A DNA stretch of 64,000 nt, from assembly GCA_047495785.1 (NCBI GenBank), contig JBLDXI010000025.1:1178001-1242000 (forward strand), in the 5' to 3' direction. This stretch comes from Lepidodermella squamata (lineage: Eukaryota; Animalia; Gastrotricha). Within the stretch, counting starts at the first letter, position 1. Each line of letters starts with the position of its first letter. The translations under genes were made by a program, and so were the position numbers. Below the pieces are notes generated by a model, which was not told the DNA's origin, did not search any database, and saw only the letters and a program-made list of their open reading frames with translations. Shown one piece after another: positions 578 through 22,446 of the stretch.

Positions 578-3500
578 TCAGCGCTCATGTTTAACGACAA
601 CGCCAGCCTTATCGCCCGCAGCCAGCAGCTCGCCATCGCCGTTTTTATTCGCAATCAGCGCCATGAACGCCTCAACCTCCTTCTCCATATCCGGCGCCGG
701 CTCCGCGTCCTCCGCCTCCATCGCCTCTTCATCGTCACCACCTTCTTCGTCATCCTCCCCTTCCCCATCCTCGCCGGTCGCCGCGTAGAAAGCTTGTTCG
801 TCCTCCTGCAGCCACGTCATCTGCTCCTGAGCGTCGTAAGCCGCCTCGCTCGCCGTAACGACAATCGACGCGAAAATGGACATGTCAGACGCGATCGACG
901 CATCGCCCTCCAGGCCTAGCACATGCCGCCAGCCGCCGTGGGCTGTCACGCGGAGTAGCGTCTGCGCCGTGTAGGTGACTCGATCCATCTCTTCGAAGGT
1001 CAGCGCCTCGTGGGCGGAAATGCCGCTGCTGGACTGGCACGGGTCGGGGATGCCGGCGGCTCCGGGGAGGAAAATGCCGCCTGCTAGGAGTTGCAGACAG
1101 CGACGGAAGGCCGGGGCGAGACCGGGCGAGCTCCCAGTGCCGGGTTCTCCCGACCCGCTCGTAGCCGCAGTTCCAGCTTTCGCGCCAGAATTCAACGCAT
1201 GCTAAAAAAAGAACTCAGTAAGCTACGAAAACTGGTCACTGGAAAACACGAAAACTCATTTCCTTCTCAGAATTTTCCGATGAAAATGAGAAATTTATAG
1301 TTCTCAAATTAAGGTCCCTTTTCCAATTGTATGCGCTAAATCGTTTGTTGCCTTGGAAATAAGAAAATTCGATGCTTGGCTCACCTGTGCGAGCAGAAGC
1401 AGCATCCATGGGTTGAGGCCCTGCATGCCTGTGAAGCGGTGCCGCATGTCTCGCAGGATGCGGACTAGCGCTCGGACGCTGGCGTTGTTCGCATTCTCCT
1501 CAAACCACTTGACGTGGCGAACCGCGGCCAGGTGCTGCTCGACCAGCTCGCGAGTCGGCTCTACAATTAAATGGAGTCATTAAAAACAATATCAACTGTG
1601 ATTTGACATAAGATAAAATGTTAGCTTGCTCTGTGAGGCGCCTGGCTGGCTTTGCTTACGCGATTAATCAAAATAAATAAACGAAGTGCTCATTTGAAGG
1701 TAATTTCAAAGTTCAACTTTTTTCACGAATTTTCGGGGTTTTCCTGACTTAGTTGCTGTTATATGCGTTACATCAAACTGGCAACAAGATTGTTGATGAT
1801 GCCAACGTTTTTCTACTCGACATGAATCTCACACAGAACGAGAATGAGCAGACTGCTTTCGAAAGCATCAGGCAAGCTCGAAAACCATTGTGGAGCTTGT
1901 GCCGAGTTCACCGGTACGGATATGAAGTACGGATACGGATACGGCTATCAGTTGTATATCAGGCTAATGAATCGACAGATGCTGCTGGTGTTGCTCAAGG
2001 TCATGAAGGTCATTGAAGGTGATCAAGCTGAATCCGAAGAAGACTTCTTCTCTGAGGTTGGCTCCCGTGGAGAAGTTCAGAGAAAGAAAGCGAGCCATCT
2101 AGTGAGAGCACTGGTGTTGCTAATATCGCTCAAGATGAAGCCAAGGGTGCTGAAGGTCAGATCGTTTTCACTGCACCTGCTGGAGCTGTGACGGCAGGTG
2201 CGGTTGTTGGAAGCGCCGTCACGGCTGTGATCCTAATTGCCAATGTCAGAAGTCATGTCTGCACTACTAAAGACTTACTATTATCTGCCCTCACTCATAA
2301 TTACGCTCAAAATCTGCCGGAATCGAGTGTCATAGTGATAACAGTTGTTTGTTACTAATAACTATTTTTGCCTTGACAAGTTCTCATCGAAAATCCTTGT
2401 TGGCTTGACAATGTAAAGAATCACGTGTTGGCCGCCATTAAACAAAGTAGGCATGCCATTAGCAATGCCGCAACGGATGGGCTGTCGAAGATTACATCTT
2501 TCAACTCACAGATACGTCGAACTGGCCTGCTTCCCGTGACCGTGTGATAGAGAAAAATTGATTGAGAGAGCACAGGACGGCCTGGGAGACGAGATCGAGT
2601 CGCGAATATATACGCGAAAGCATTTACGAGGAACTGGAACACGATATCAAACGTTATTCATTGAATTTTATTGATGTCGTTGGAACTACGTGCGGCATCT
2701 ATTTTAGGGATACGTCTGCTTGAAGAGCGGACTCACGATGGCGACAATAACTGCTGAGCAAGCGTTCCGCAAATATCATCCAGCGTGCTCAACGTCTTTT
2801 CGACTTCGAATTGGCGATTCGGCGAGCCTTTCCCGATGTTTTCCCATCGGTCGTTTTGCCCGGGTGTTTCTTCCATCTAAGGCAAAATCTGCTGAAAAAT
2901 TCAATTCTCCCACAATTCTTTCTAATTGCGATTTCGTTCAATATGACGAATGATATTTTCGCACTACCTCCGCGAAAGAAGCGTCCGTTAAGCTGTTCGG
3001 CTGCTCGCTGTCTTAGCCTACCGACCTGTCGGGCGTATTGCGACCTCTTTTTGAGTTTTGGCGAATCGCTTCAATAATAGTGACCTTCGATTGCAATTCC
3101 TCATTCTTCAAACAATCTACAGATATTTTGTTGGGTTTTACATAGGCGCCATCGACGGATGAGGGAATTTACGAATACTTGTCGGAACACGGTTCCTACG
3201 ATGCGAAGTACGATTTCAGTAATAGTTTTTCCTCCGCCAATCGGAACTTTTATCAACATTCGGCCTTCGCCACAGAGGTCCTTACCAATTTTGGACATCA
3301 GCTGGTGGTTACTCACCGTGTTCTGAACACAAATGCTTCATCAATTCCCTAATGTGTATTACTCATATATTAGCTGAAGAATGAGACTAAGCGGTGAAAA
3401 CGTTTAGCATACGTTGCGTAGGTTGAGCTCACTCAGCTGAACTCTTTCACCAAGCGTGAATGAAGCAAAATCAACCGAACCATGAAAGATGTCACAATAC

Positions 3501-6500
3501 AGGTGAGAAGTAAAAATCAACGAATTATAACTCTTTTCTGCGCCCAAGTGACCTTATTGCGAAACTCAAAAGCTCGAAAAACAATTTATGAAATTAAAAT
3601 AGGGCATTTTTCCAGATCATCAAATGAAGTTATAATTTGAACGGTAATGCGAGCTTACGGTGAATTGAATCGTCGAGCAGGCGCAAATTTGTTGGAATAG
3701 TCGCGATAAGGCACCGCAAACTCGCTTGCCGAGTCGCAATATCGAAACCGCTCGGTGTCATGGTCGATTGGACCCATTCGTTTCGGTTAGCCAAGCGATA
3801 GTCTGCCAACAGCTTATTGCACAGGGCCGAAACAGCTTCCTCTGTCGACCGAAAACATGAATGCAATTCATTTTCATACCCGACTGAAACTCACTGGTTG
3901 GGAGGGTTCGAAGCACGGTCACAACATCAGCTTGGTTCTTCTCACGAATCATTGTCTGCGTCTTGTACGAGCCAACTTGTTTCACCTCTTCGATTTGCTA
4001 AAATAACACAGCGATTTCAAAATGCGATCGTGAAGTGGTAAAAGTTAGGAATTCAAAAAAGTTGCGGAAAGGAAAATTACATATCTGCTACCGAGAAAAA
4101 TCAGGTGTCTTTGCTGGCGTCTTTTAGTAAGAATCAGGGCTAGAAAAGTTCTTCTTCTTCCCATCACCGGCTTCAAGATAATTTGACTCGCCACAAGGAG
4201 GCAAAACATAGGAAAATTTTGGAAAAAATCCCCAAAAAAGTTATCGTTTTATATTCCAAGCAAAATTTCGACTACTACATCGAGCAATCCTGTAATTCGC
4301 CAGCCTTCCACTTCAGAGGAGAATTCGACAGTAGACGATAGTATTCGCGCTGCAATTCATCGATTCCTGATGAGTACTGATGTCAGTCGAAATATCAATA
4401 TTGTCAACGGACGAAGATGCTACCAAGATCTTACGAGGTCCTATCAAGACGATAACTTGCTCATATTACCTTCATTTGGGTTTATTTCGATAATTGGGGC
4501 TTGGGGCTATCCGGACGAATGTTCATACGAACAGTAGAATCCCAATGATTTTGCCGGTACTATCGACGCAGAAGGTTTCCGCATCGCGATCGCGATGTCG
4601 AATATATTATTTTCTGATAAATATGAGTGCTTCTAAAGCTGAAGAGCCCTTGGCATTTAGTCCCGCAGCTGCCGGGAACGTGGAGGGGTGATATTCCGGA
4701 GACATGGGGCGATAATGACACGCTGGTCGCGCTCGCTTGAGTTTACCACGTTCATGTGCTGGTCCATACCTATCACACAACACACATCTTCCCTGCCTTC
4801 GGAACTGACCTTGGCGGTGTGAAGCAACTGATCTCGCCTACAACGGAACTGATCATTACTACTCAGTCGTCAAAGAGGGTTTCCTATCGACGGACCGCCA
4901 CAAACTTTGCGAATTAATTGCATTGGTGGAAAAATAGTTCGCTTCAAGCTGGCATAATACTTTAACCGTCAGCTAGACCAGATCGTGGCCAGCTGAAGAA
5001 CGGCGCCAAGTCCAATGTTGTTATGACAAATGACAAGGCTTTTTTCCAAGGCTGTGAAATAGTTTTCCCGTCAGCTAGACGCTTGATGTGTTTCTTCCAC
5101 CTCATGAAAATCGTCAAAGAACGCTGGCGAGGCAATTGCAGAGAGCCGAAACATCAACATCGATTTACATCAGAACGAATCTGCATCATCAAGCCTATCG
5201 GTCGTCGTGGTGCCGGGCGAAAGCCAACCTACCTATTATCTTTTTCTCGTTAACAGTCATTGTATGGCCCTGGGCAAGTAAGGTACCATGGATATTCTCG
5301 CGGTAATTGAACTAGCCATTTTTTATTTAATTTTATTTAACATTTTCTTTAACATTTGCAAACTCGATTGAAAATTATGAATTCTATACAAAAAGCAGAA
5401 TCCTCGACTGTGGGGGTGGGTGAGGAACGTTCTTCGCCTGCCTTCGCCCTCTTCAAAACCGGAAACGGTACACGACGCTCAGTCTCGAAGAGGCAAAATA
5501 AAACTATTATTATTATTATTATGCTCTTTAATCGCAGAAGAACTGGGAGCGTTTAAAAATAAATTCCGAGATCTTCTAATTTTCTTTTTTCATCTAGCCT
5601 TAGTACAGCGGTTCCCATGAGGGGGGTTGCGACCCAATTTTGGGTCGCAAGGGCTTTCTCGATGGGTCGACCCGCTGGGCCGCGGGTCGCGTGGGTCGCA
5701 AGGCAAACATAGGCTTGAGAAAAAAATAAGTGATGAATGAGTGAGTGGCACGCGTTTGCAGTGGTAAAAAAGTGATGAAATTTACTTTTTATGGAATAAA
5801 TTTTTTCAATTTCATCCACACATGCTCGCATTCAACTTTCTGACGTGTATTTTACTGGCCAAGAAATTAACAGCCGGCTATTTAAGAAATTGTGCGACGC
5901 ATTCAACGTGTTACTCTTCTATACCGAAGAGGTGGCTGTCGCGGGGGAAGGTGTTGGACAGAGTCTTTCGATTGAGGGAGGAAATTCACAAGTTTCTCGT
6001 GGAAAAATAACCACGATCTTGCAGAAAGGTTCAACGGCACGAAGTTCACCCTGCGTCTGGCATTTTTAGCCGATATTTTTGGCTTTGTCGTAGCTTTGAA
6101 CATTTCGCTTCAAGGAGGAAAGAAATATGTTTTCCAGTTGCAGCAGCATGTCGTTACGTTCATCAATAAACTCCCCGTTTACCGTGATCGTATAAGCAAC
6201 AAGGAATACAAATCTTTTTCGTTCCTGAACGAAGTGGTTGTAACCTATGAAATTTCGGTTCCAAAGAAAATTCGCAAACAATTCATTTCTTATCTGGAAA
6301 ACTTGGAAAATGAGTTTCGAAGGCGATTCTCTGAAGAGCTGAAGGCCGATTACTCTGATGTTCGGTTTCCCTTTACTGTCGACCCAACTAAGTTACTAAA
6401 GTCGAGCTACTATCCGAACTTTGATCTGTTAGCCAAAGAAACCTGATTTGATATTTGATGACTACATGACTCTGTTACAAAAATGTGAGAATATGGAAAA

Positions 6501-19343: not shown

Positions 19344-19907
19344 TTTAGCGGATTGGAAATATTGCACAGATAATAAATCTAAACTGAGACAGAAACAAAC
19401 AACGTTAAATAGGATAACGACTAAGCAGCTCTGTTCTCTCTCGCGTCGAGACTTCTTGCTTGAGGCTGAACATTTTGCCAAAACATTTCCGCGAACTAGA
19501 TTTTATAACTGGCGGCATGGGTGGCGGGCAGCGGGCCAATTTTAAGGGGGTCTGCTTCCGTTCACACTTGACGGCATCAAGGAAGCTTGGGACAAAACTC
19601 TTGGGTAACAAAGGTCACTTAGGCGAACTCCCTTCAACGTGAAACGAACTCTGTCGCAGCATCAAATTCGCGGGGTTTTTGCAAAATATGACCTTGAAAC
19701 ACATTTTTTGTAAAATTTTCCATCATTGTCGATTTTAATCAATACTAGATATAAATAGTCTTAAAAAGAGGCATGCGAGAATGAGGCGCAACACGAGGCA
19801 CCAAATAGCGTGAGTCAAAAAGCTTGGGGTGTAGAGTTTTCAATATTTTTAGTAAGTGTGACCGTTAACCGTCTAACGTCAACGTCAAACGTTTTGCCTG
19901 TTTGAGC

Positions 19908-20824
19908 ATGCCGGTGAGTTTCCTTTCCAATATAGCTTGCTTAAATTCTTACTTGGGATTGTTTTCTCCAGGCTTATCATTCGCAGTTTACTGAGAGTTC
20001 GCCGCAATCGGTGGGCAATCTTGCCATATTGCCTATCAAAACTCAATTACGCGGTCCTGCCCCTAGACATCGTTAGTTTTAGCGATATCCTGTTTCCTTC
20101 CTATAATAGATTCCTGATTTTAATGTAGCCGGTGGATCTGCCGACGACGATATCATTGATGAAACCTTGAAGTACTTCAAGGCGAATGTATTCTTTCGGC
20201 GATTTGAAATCAAGGGCGATGCCGATCGTGTGATGATTTACCTCACTCTTTACGTCACAGAGTGTTTGAAGCGCTTGCAAAGGACTTCTTCGAAAGAACA
20301 GGGCAAGAAGGAGTTGGCTTCTCTGGCTCTCGAAAAGCTCCCGATTCCCGGCGAACCTAACTTTCCATTGAATGCTATGTACGCTAAGCCGAAGAACCCT
20401 CAAGAACAAGGTGAGAATGATTTTATATCTATGGTCTCTTCAATAATTCCAAGGGATGATATTTACAAGCGAGACTGGCGAGATTTGCTATTGATGTGAG
20501 TCATCGCAGGGCAGTTTTGCGGCTTTGATTCATGTTGATAGCTCGTAATCAAACCTACCCTGTGATTGCAATGTAGTCATAGTTACTCTGATGGGTCTCA
20601 ATTAGTCTATTTAAGCATCTTGATTTTTTCGATAGTCTCTTACGACTTTTTTGTGCTTTCTAGAATTGATGCAGCTCTATCTGCTCCAACTGAGACAAGA
20701 ACTCGGCCTTCGGCTTGTCGACAAAGTGTTCGACCCTCAAACAGATAAGCCGAGCAAATGGTGGATGTGTTTTGTGCGTCGCCGTTTCATGGACAAGAGT
20801 CTTTCGGGCAATTCAACCAATTAA
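19908..20824 (+). CDS. ARPC3: Arp2/3 complex subunit 3 (p21-Arc); exons 19908-19913, 19972-20071, 20129-20410, 20664-20824
   Basis: MPAYHS..., [59 protein letters not shown]...[18 protein letters not shown]. Confidence 0.96.
20446..20596 (+). ncRNA. Intronic box C/D snoRNA, SNORD46/snR63-like (copy 1, ARPC3 intron 3)
   Basis: Variant box C GGGATGA at 20453-20459 and box D CTGA at 20588-20591, closed by a CCA/TGG terminal stem. The guide AGTCATAGTTACT is complementary to the conserved LSU rRNA sequence AGUAACUAUGACU. Long central hairpin; box D lies 72 nt before the 3' splice site. Confidence 0.88.
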
Positions 20825-21085
20825 AGAAACAATTTTACGAAAATCAGCTGTCGTGCATTTTCATCAATTCATTCATTCTCGATTTCCAATTTAATCAACG
20901 CTGATTGTTTATTATTATTTACTTATTATTTATCGTTGAAGCTCTAAGCTTGAGATGCTATCCCGCTACAAATTGCAACAACCGAAGTGCTAATATCAAG
21001 CTAGTGTATGGCTTTGCATGCTTTTTAAACAAAAATGATGAGAATTTAATTGATTGCTTTCTTTCCTGTAGAGTTTTAAATAATA

Positions 21086-22446
21086 ATGTCGGCTGAATCT
21101 GCTCCAGTCGCAGTGGGCTTTTCGAACCTGCCGAGCCAAGCTCATCGAAAAGCTGTTAAGAAGGGCTTTGAATTGACTATCATGGTTGTTGGCGAATCTG
21201 GCCTTGGAAAATCAACGCTGATTCCGGCCTTGTTTTTATCGGACGCGCTCTACAATTCGCAGCAAGCTAATACAACCCAAGATATTTACGATCGAACTAC
21301 TAAAATCGAAACTCACACTGTCGACATCGAAGAGGGTGGCGTTAAAGTCCATCTAACAATTGTTGACACGCCTGGTTACGCCGATGGGCTCGATTGCACT
21401 CAAGAGTAAGTATATTTTCAAAATAATCCGAGTTTTGATTCCAAGGGATGATATTTACAAGCGAGACTGGCGAGATTTGCTATTGATGTGAGTCATCGCA
21501 GGGCAGTTCTGCGGCTTTGATTCATGTTGATAGCTCGTAATCAAACCTACCCTGTGATTGCAATGTAGTCATAGTTACTCTGATGGGTTTTATTTCATCA
21601 TATAGTAACTGCTAGCATTTTTTCTGACGAAATGCTAATTTTTATTGCTTTTTCAGCATTGCACCAATTATTCGCTACATCGACGAGCAGTACGAGAAGT
21701 ATTTTCGCGACGAAAGCGGGCTGAACCGGCGAAATATCACCGACACGCGAGTTCACGCCTGTCTGTACTTCATCTCGCCGACTGGTTACGGCCTGAAATC
21801 AATCGACCGCGAATTCATTCGTTTACTGCAAAACAAAGTCAACATCGTGCCAGTCATTGCTAAAGCTGACACTTTGACCTCGTCGGAGTTGTCTTCACTA
21901 AAGGCCTTGATCCTCGAACAAATTCGCGCTGCTGATTTGAAAATTTTCCAAATCCCAGAGGCTGAGGTTGAGGAGGATATCGAGTATAAAAAGATCTGCA
22001 CTGCTCTGAAGCAAGCGATGCCTTTCGGCGTTGTTGGCGCGCCACTGGATTCGTACATTGAGGTCAAAGGGCGTAAGATTCGAGGCAGGGCCTATCCCTG
22101 GGGTGTGGTTGAGATCGACAACCCTGACCATTGCGATTTCGTGAAGTTACGAGCTTTATTGACTACGCACATGGGCGAGCTCCGTGATTCAACTCACGAT
22201 GTGTTGTACGAGGCGTATCGAGCTCAGCGTTTGCTGTCAACTGGCCCGGTTAGCGGCGGGTCTGCCGTTGATTCGTCGAGTTCGCTGCTGAGTGGCCAGG
22301 CTGGTCGAATGATGGACGAAGCGACGGAAAAAGAGCGTTTGCTGGCTGAAAAAGAACGCGAGTTGCGAGAGCTGGAACGCAAGCTGAAGAAGCAGCTTGA
22401 ACAGCAGCAGCAGCACCAAATCCAAACTTCGAATTCGATTGTCTGA
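21086..22446 (+). CDS. Septin, SEPT2-group-like; exons 21086-21405, 21657-22446
   Basis: [92 protein letters not shown] and a C-terminal coiled coil (EKERELRE). Confidence 0.93.
21438..21588 (+). ncRNA. Intronic box C/D snoRNA, SNORD46/snR63-like (copy 2, septin intron 1)
   Basis: 150/151 nt identical to 20446-20596; box D at 21580-21583 lies 73 nt before the 3' splice site. Confidence 0.88.

Follow-up and report, generated by a model that had tools for sequence, protein, structure and literature searches.

Two near-identical copies of a probable intron-encoded box C/D snoRNA in the neighbouring ARPC3 and septin genes of the gastrotrich Lepidodermella squamata

The window analysed here is a 64-kb stretch of the genome of the gastrotrich Lepidodermella squamata (64,000 nt; GenBank assembly GCA_047495785.1, contig JBLDXI010000025.1, positions 1,178,001 to 1,242,000), and all coordinates below are positions in this window, where all features described lie on the plus strand. 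Two adjacent genes, one for the Arp2/3 complex subunit ARPC3 and one for a septin, each carry a 151-nt block within an intron. The two blocks are identical at 150 of 151 positions according to a repeat search, a pairwise alignment and a script, and the sole mismatch falls at block position 72, where the ARPC3 copy (copy 1) has a T at 20517 and the septin copy (copy 2) has a C at 21509. Taken as a whole, the evidence makes it quite probable that a single intron-encoded box C/D small nucleolar RNA (snoRNA) is present here in two gene copies, one per block.

A preliminary description of this DNA, made from the sequence alone, had reported the 151-nt duplication with its one T/C difference, flanks that are unrelated, and an identity that ends at the terminal stem of the RNA; the repeat search, the alignment and a shuffle test bear this out. 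The identity breaks off sharply at both edges, 7 nt 5′ of box C and 5 nt 3′ of box D, and the terminal stem is found at these edges. Compared without the donor site, the polypyrimidine tract and the acceptor, the intron flanks showed no similarity above that of shuffled sequence, either upstream (p 0.95) or downstream (p 0.36). Both a search for the guide plus D box at 3 mismatches and a short-word BLAST of the block returned only the two copies in the window. In the DNA run X1, the block formed its own 151-nt contig with a depth of 178, its four unique neighbour contigs had depths of 77-88, and each of the four block/flank junctions was covered by a unique contig with a 30-nt overlap. A separate contig of double depth with four unique neighbours is, in our reading, the pattern that a two-copy repeat leaves in a de Bruijn graph. 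The depth of about twice that of the flanks and the four covered junctions therefore point to about two block copies in the whole genome and to no assembly artefact, although X1 may derive from the same sample as the window assembly and so provides read support rather than independent replication. In X1, the C variant (21509) was apparently under-represented relative to single-copy depth: its bin had a mean depth of about 17, and nearly the summed depth of both loci was on the shared contig. The sole T/C difference may therefore segregate as a polymorphism instead of being fixed.

The preliminary description had itself named two ways in which it could fail, namely that the block is a dispersed high-copy miniature inverted-repeat transposable element (MITE) or that the duplication is an artefact of assembly. 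The sharp edges of the duplicated block and the presence of an internal hairpin (described below) would be expected of a MITE-like mobile element. Such an origin, like an artefact, is nevertheless highly improbable given the two copies in 64 kb, the X1 depth of only about twice the flanks and the four junctions in separate contigs. In addition, the block has no terminal inverted repeats, its hairpin forms on one strand only, and a snoRNA of a distant relative is orthologous to the 5′ and 3′ parts of the block.

The anatomy of the block is that of a box C/D snoRNA (Table 1). Both copies carry a C box near the 5′ end and a D box near the 3′ end, and the elements are laid out as in a kink-turn (k-turn): the stem UCCA/UGGG is followed by the 3-nt spacer AGG and then by a GA opposite the GA of box D. 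Among the internal boxes, the C′ box GUGAUUG is conserved, being identical in the relative and in a third paralog of the same genome (both treated below), while D′ is represented only by the degenerate conserved motif GCGAGAC. Between the C box and this D′-like motif, the three versions all differ from one another, so that a conserved D′ guide cannot be seen there. An alignment to the Rfam family DdR4 prompted the consideration of a shorter snoRNA that would start at a second C-like box (UUGAUGU near 20491). This candidate was rejected because a terminal stem is missing from it, and because the relative has kept the outer C box together with its stem.

Table 1. Features of the two snoRNA copies and of their host genes in the window
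Feature	Position	Position in copy 2	Strand	Basis
snoRNA copy 1, long form, 151 nt, ARPC3 intron 3, probable ancestral location	20446..20596		+	sequence, alignment, ortholog in the relative
snoRNA copy 2, long form, 151 nt, septin intron 1, probable derived location	21438..21588		+	alignment; septin intron of the relative without snoRNA
Terminal stem, 5′ half UCCA	20448..20451	21440-21443	+	pairs with UGGG
C box GGGAUGA, 6/7 of RUGAUGA	20453..20459	21445-21451	+	read from sequence
D′-like motif GCGAGAC	20469..20475	21461-21467	+	kept in window copies, L001 and third paralog (GCGAGAU)
Lineage-specific linker, 84 nt, D′-like motif to C′ region	20476..20559	21468-21551	+	alignments
Internal hairpin, 56 nt	20487..20542	21479-21534	+	folding
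C′ box GUGAUUG	20562..20568	21554-21560	+	aligned to box in Rfam DdR4, snoR442
D guide AGUCAUAGUUACU, 13 nt	20575..20587	21567-21579	+	complementary to 28S helix-69 AGUAACUAUGACU
D box CUGA	20588..20591	21580-21583	+	read from sequence
Terminal stem, 3′ half UGGG, 4-bp stem	20592-20595	21584-21587	+	read from sequence
ARPC3 host gene	19908..20824		+	exons 19908-19913, 19972-20071, 20129-20410, 20664-20824
Trans-splice acceptor upstream of septin ATG	21060..21071		+	RNA contig with foreign leader
Septin host gene	21086..22446		+	exons 21086-21405, 21657-22446

The guide forms 13 contiguous Watson-Crick pairs with AGUAACUAUGACU of the 28S ribosomal RNA (rRNA), and position D+5 is opposite the second A of GUAAC. 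The antisense element thus exceeds 10 nt, ends at box D and places its fifth pair on the equivalent of a nucleotide known to be methylated, within a target that is a conserved eukaryotic sequence. We take yeast A2256 to be this second A of GUAAC, by counting against the yeast pseudouridines at 2258, 2260, 2264 and 2266. An animal 28S sequence with GGGAGUAACUAUGACUCUC has been printed (PMC13000458), and the nucleotide methylated by such RNAs is the partner of the fifth position upstream of box D (PMC10557570). Yeast Am2256, guided by snR63, corresponds to human A3739, which lies in helix 69 and in the intersubunit bridge B2a (bioRxiv 10.1101/2024.08.07.607065). Human A3739 is guided by SNORD46, and GlsR7 of Giardia has been seen as a SNORD46 homolog with the same guide and the same target (PMC6461891). 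It had been proposed for this DNA that the D guide addresses the large-subunit rRNA and, by the D+5 rule, targets the second A of GUAAC, the site of yeast snR63 (Am2256) and human SNORD46, and both the pairing and the literature agree with this.

Assignment to a family is a different matter from the assignment of a target. In a permissive Rfam search, the block matched DdR4 (25 bits), snoR442 (24.8 bits, E 0.001) and GlsR7, all below the gathering threshold and all via the segment that runs from C′ through the guide to D. The short form of the RNA in the relative matched the same three families and, weakly, SNORD46 (11.5 bits, where the gathering score is 40), via the guide and C′ region. The snR63 family was not among the Rfam matches of the window copies or of the relative's short form. 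GlsR7, DdR4 and snoR442 have an identical guide core in common with the window RNA, so that a shared target is indicated. The link to SNORD46 and snR63 made in the preliminary description therefore stands for the target but is not borne out for Rfam family membership, as the gathering score was not reached: judged from its sequence, the RNA has the predicted SNORD46/snR63 target, while membership in the family is not supported by the model. A nucleomorph snoRNA has presented the same case (PMC6461891).

The window RNA resembles SNORD46 (U46), snR63, GlsR7 and DdR4 in the guide core UCAUAGUUAC beside box D and hence in the predicted target, as well as in the box C/D architecture with the guide at the D box and not at D′. 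Outside the guide and the C′ region, the similarity is negligible. Unlike these RNAs, the window copies have an extra internal hairpin of 56 nt, and they are hosted by ARPC3 and a septin; human SNORD46 lies in an intron of RPS8. A scan of metagenome sequences for a pattern of the C′-guide-D segment gave no match, and a shorter pattern matched only a set of GC-rich contigs (L003-L007, e.g., L005 2152-2451) from an unrelated eukaryote. These contigs carry a box C/D-like RNA just after a GTGAG donor, with an identical helix-69 guide and a CUGAUGG end, which illustrates the wide conservation of the guide.

The host genes were identified with Pfam models, which were run exon by exon and not on a joined spliced protein model. 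The P21-Arc (ARPC3) domain matched 20131-20409 and 20666-20821, and the Septin domain matched 21086-21406 and 21658-22443. Four GT..AG introns (19914-19971, 20072-20128, 20411-20663 and 21406-21656) are skipped in transcriptome contigs of the runs X2 and X3, the septin splice joint being present in a spliced contig of X2. Copy 1 lies in ARPC3 intron 3 (20411-20663, 253 nt) and copy 2 in the sole septin intron (21406-21656, 251 nt), and the block begins 35 nt after the donor in ARPC3 and 32 nt after it in the septin gene. From the end of the D box, it is 72 nt to the end of ARPC3 intron 3 (counted from 20591) and 73 nt to the end of the septin intron (counted from 21583). These two distances had been noted before from the letters alone, and they hold now that the introns are set by spliced contigs. 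Like the 67 nt found in the relative, they fall within the range of about 60-80 nt ahead of the 3′ splice site that is typical of splicing-dependent intronic box C/D snoRNAs. The acceptor-distance rule for the splicing-dependent processing of such RNAs reportedly goes back to Hirose and Steitz in 2001. Downstream of copy 2, the septin intron also contains a small hairpin (21600-21640, AGCATTT ... AAATGCT) that encloses a CTGA motif, close to where the branch point would be expected.

A search with the septin exon found one close protein, P0001 (61% identity), which is encoded on the metagenome scaffolds L001 and L002 of a distant relative. On both scaffolds, ARPC3 lies directly upstream of the septin gene, on the same strand and with the spacing of about 265 nt that is also seen in the window. 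The orthologous ARPC3 intron of L001 (4883-5048, 166 nt) contains a short form of the snoRNA of about 68 nt (at about 4918-4987), which has the same terminal stem UCCA/UGGG, a C box AGGAUGA, the motif GCGAGAC, the same C′ box and an identical guide, with 67 nt between its D box and the acceptor. No snoRNA is present in the orthologous septin intron of L001 (5852-5902, 51 nt), which has the same codon position and phase. Since the relative has the snoRNA in its ARPC3 intron only, the ARPC3 copy would be ancestral and the septin copy derived, and the comparison of these sequences indicates that the direction of copying is from ARPC3 to septin. That the relative instead lost a septin copy is a less parsimonious reading. 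The association of ARPC3 with the snoRNA has been kept between two lineages whose septins are about 61-67% identical. The two genes had previously been called atypical hosts for a snoRNA, a judgement that loses much of its force with an ARPC3 association that is old and conserved; nor is ARPC3, as a subunit of the Arp2/3 complex, the actin gene as which it had been described. Just upstream of ARPC3, L001 also has an open reading frame (ORF) for a reverse transcriptase and another with a hAT-dimerisation domain (1804-4131), which a limited look did not find on the matching side of the window.

The spacing of the block from donor and acceptor is 32 and 68 nt in the septin intron, 35 and 67 nt in the ARPC3 intron, and 35 and 61 nt in the ARPC3 intron of the relative. 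Across the two loci, the six introns without a snoRNA measure about 50-58 nt, and the three that bear one measure 166-253 nt. Without its block, the septin intron is about 100 nt long, about twice the usual intron length at these loci.

The two host genes also seem to be linked at the level of the transcript. The start of the ARPC3 mRNA near 19833 is a loose end directly behind a cDNA adapter (template-switch oligo), and the ARPC3 contigs of two runs end at 21044. The septin contig of X2 begins with 22 foreign letters (ending ...AAATTTTCTG) at the acceptor 21070/71, 15 nt before the ATG, and these leader letters are absent from the whole window. The gap between the end of the ARPC3 mRNA and the leader acceptor is 27 nt. 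This short gap, together with the conserved gene pair, makes an ARPC3-septin operon likely, and ARPC3 and septin are probably one trans-spliced operon; the earlier suggestion that the two genes are possibly co-transcribed has thus gained support from a foreign leader that joins 27 nt after the upstream mRNA ends.

The window copies differ from the short form above all by an insert. In both the relative and the third paralog, 2 nt lie between the D′-like motif and the C′ region, and in both window copies there are 84 nt, a net insert of about 82 nt that makes the long form twice the size of the relative's version. Because the insert is common to both window copies, the expansion would have preceded the duplication. 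The core of the insert (20487-20542) folds with 24 pairs, of which 7 are G-U, at -24.8 kcal/mol (z -5.05), and none of 200 shuffled sequences folded as well. The opposite strand of this hairpin reaches only -11.6 kcal/mol, since the hairpin has seven G-U and no A-C pairs. In copy 2, the hairpin reaches -27.3 kcal/mol, the difference at 20517/21509 making a G-U pair in copy 1 and a G-C pair in copy 2. A decaying DNA palindrome would give mismatches of both kinds, and the modelled hairpin therefore looks as if it has been shaped at the RNA level, on the snoRNA strand. An origin of the insert by internal tandem duplication of the snoRNA found no support, as local alignments were no better than those of shuffles (p about 0.3) and a perfect 12-nt match among them is a meaningless product of overlapping slices; a permissive Rfam search of the sense strand of the insert gave no known family.

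One further DNA contig of X1 matches the block only at 20560-20591 and diverges on both sides, which indicates a third, short-form paralog elsewhere in the genome. Upstream of an identical C′-guide-D segment, this paralog has an AGGAUGA box followed by a spacer of its own, and GCGAGAU immediately precedes the C′ region. Its terminal stem is formed by GCU ahead of the C box and AGC after box D; both sides are changed and the pairing is kept, and this two-sided change gives small covariation support for the fold. With such a paralog at hand, the long-form copies might be decaying or inactive pseudo-snoRNAs that were disabled by the insert, the short paralog supplying the methylation in helix 69. 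The intact boxes and the identical C′-guide-D segment of the short paralog would fit this, as would a long form of twice the size of the relative's RNA, yet we regard it as unlikely. In both long copies, the boxes, the terminal stem and the guide are intact and the favoured acceptor spacing is kept, and their insert is a well-formed, G-U-rich hairpin of the sense strand and not random sequence. The SNORD46 model of Rfam is, moreover, already 104 positions long. Yeast snR63 has about 255 nt, and long internal regions are tolerated in this class of RNA.

On the reading that both copies are functional snoRNA genes, each intron, once spliced, would be debranched and trimmed by exonucleases to the part that is covered by the core proteins at the C/D k-turn, as is inferred from established snoRNA biology. 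The 13-nt guide would then pair with helix 69 of the 28S rRNA, and fibrillarin would methylate the ribose of the second A of GUAAC. As for the history of the locus, an ancestral snoRNA in the ARPC3 intron may have been enlarged between D′ and C′ by an insert of about 82 nt, which folds into a hairpin on the sense strand, and the enlarged snoRNA may then have been copied into the sole intron of the next downstream gene, septin, probably within the same primary transcript.

How recent this copying was can be read in two ways from the identity of 150/151. Either the copying is about as young as allelic variation, or it is older and gene conversion has held the copies alike, and the data do not settle which. 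A very recent hop templated by RNA, in which a reverse transcript of the mature, protein-trimmed snoRNA entered the neighbouring intron, would explain why the limits of identity are the expected mature ends and why the flanks have no residual similarity. The paralogs differ at no more than 1 of 151 positions, about the level of exon differences from strain to strain, and retroposition of snoRNAs is known in mammals (PMC2653536). Such a hop is possible but, in our view, rather doubtful. A poly(A) tail is missing: the sequence after copy 2 is TTTATTTC, without an A-run, and there is at most a 5-nt T-rich repeat, which differs from what is found in a snoRNA retroposon (snoRT). The edges of copy 2, examined for microhomology and for a target-site duplication, yielded nothing convincing, only a possible weak GTTTT in a T-rich intron. 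Apart from the block, moreover, the recipient intron has about 100 nt, double the length usual at these loci, and a spacing like that of the donor intron, which a fresh random insertion would show with a chance of about 3% by our own estimate. An older copy that was homogenised by gene conversion is slightly favoured, because the septin intron has acquired the donor-like spacing and measures about 100 nt without the block, compared with 51 nt in the relative; such a spacing takes time to be acquired, and an identity of 150/151 is hard to fit with that time unless gene conversion has acted. More speculatively, the enlarged snoRNA might be a mobile unit at the RNA level, with ends defined by its protein coat and with tail-less, RNA-templated copying into another intron of the same polycistronic transcript, and the 56-nt hairpin might be a second module, for example a precursor of a small RNA; this we consider improbable.

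Several points weigh against the interpretation as two working guide genes on one transcript. The rRNA target was taken from the conserved eukaryotic 28S sequence and not from that of this animal. At gathering thresholds, Rfam gave no match in the whole window, and the SNORD46 model (RF00218) found none to the window copies at E values up to 10. Over the introns, the transcriptome contigs have low depth and may represent unspliced precursor. The long form could be impaired by its insert, in which case the short third paralog would do the work. Finally, joint transcription is deduced from one leader-bearing contig and the gap that precedes it, and no read spanning both genes was seen.

Duplications of intronic snoRNAs in cis and in trans have been well described (PMC2653536). 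As in the cis- and trans-duplications of vertebrates and nematodes that are so named there, a paralog has appeared here in a nearby intron, with the snoRNA conserved and the flanks unrelated. The difference is that the second intron belongs to an unrelated protein-coding gene, probably of the same operon, so that the event would be 'trans' by gene and 'cis' by primary transcript. Like the mammalian snoRTs, the copy occupies a new intron and has boundaries near the ends of the RNA; unlike them, the window copy is without a poly(A) tail or a clear target-site duplication. No published snoRNA annotation was found for this animal group. As a methylation guide of the box C/D class, the RNA is ordinary and its site is conserved and well known; its kind, its target and its duplication to nearby introns are all familiar, so that the value of the locus is descriptive and not conceptual. 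This case stands out for its conserved ARPC3 host, for the structured insert that was carried into the second copy, and for donor and recipient introns that are probably parts of one operon transcript. The locus offers a clean methylation guide for helix 69 and an example of a stable association with a non-ribosomal host, ARPC3. It also gives an order of events, in which an internal expansion would have been followed by copying into the next gene. As the donor and recipient introns are probably on one operon transcript, the locus bears on how intronic snoRNAs spread.

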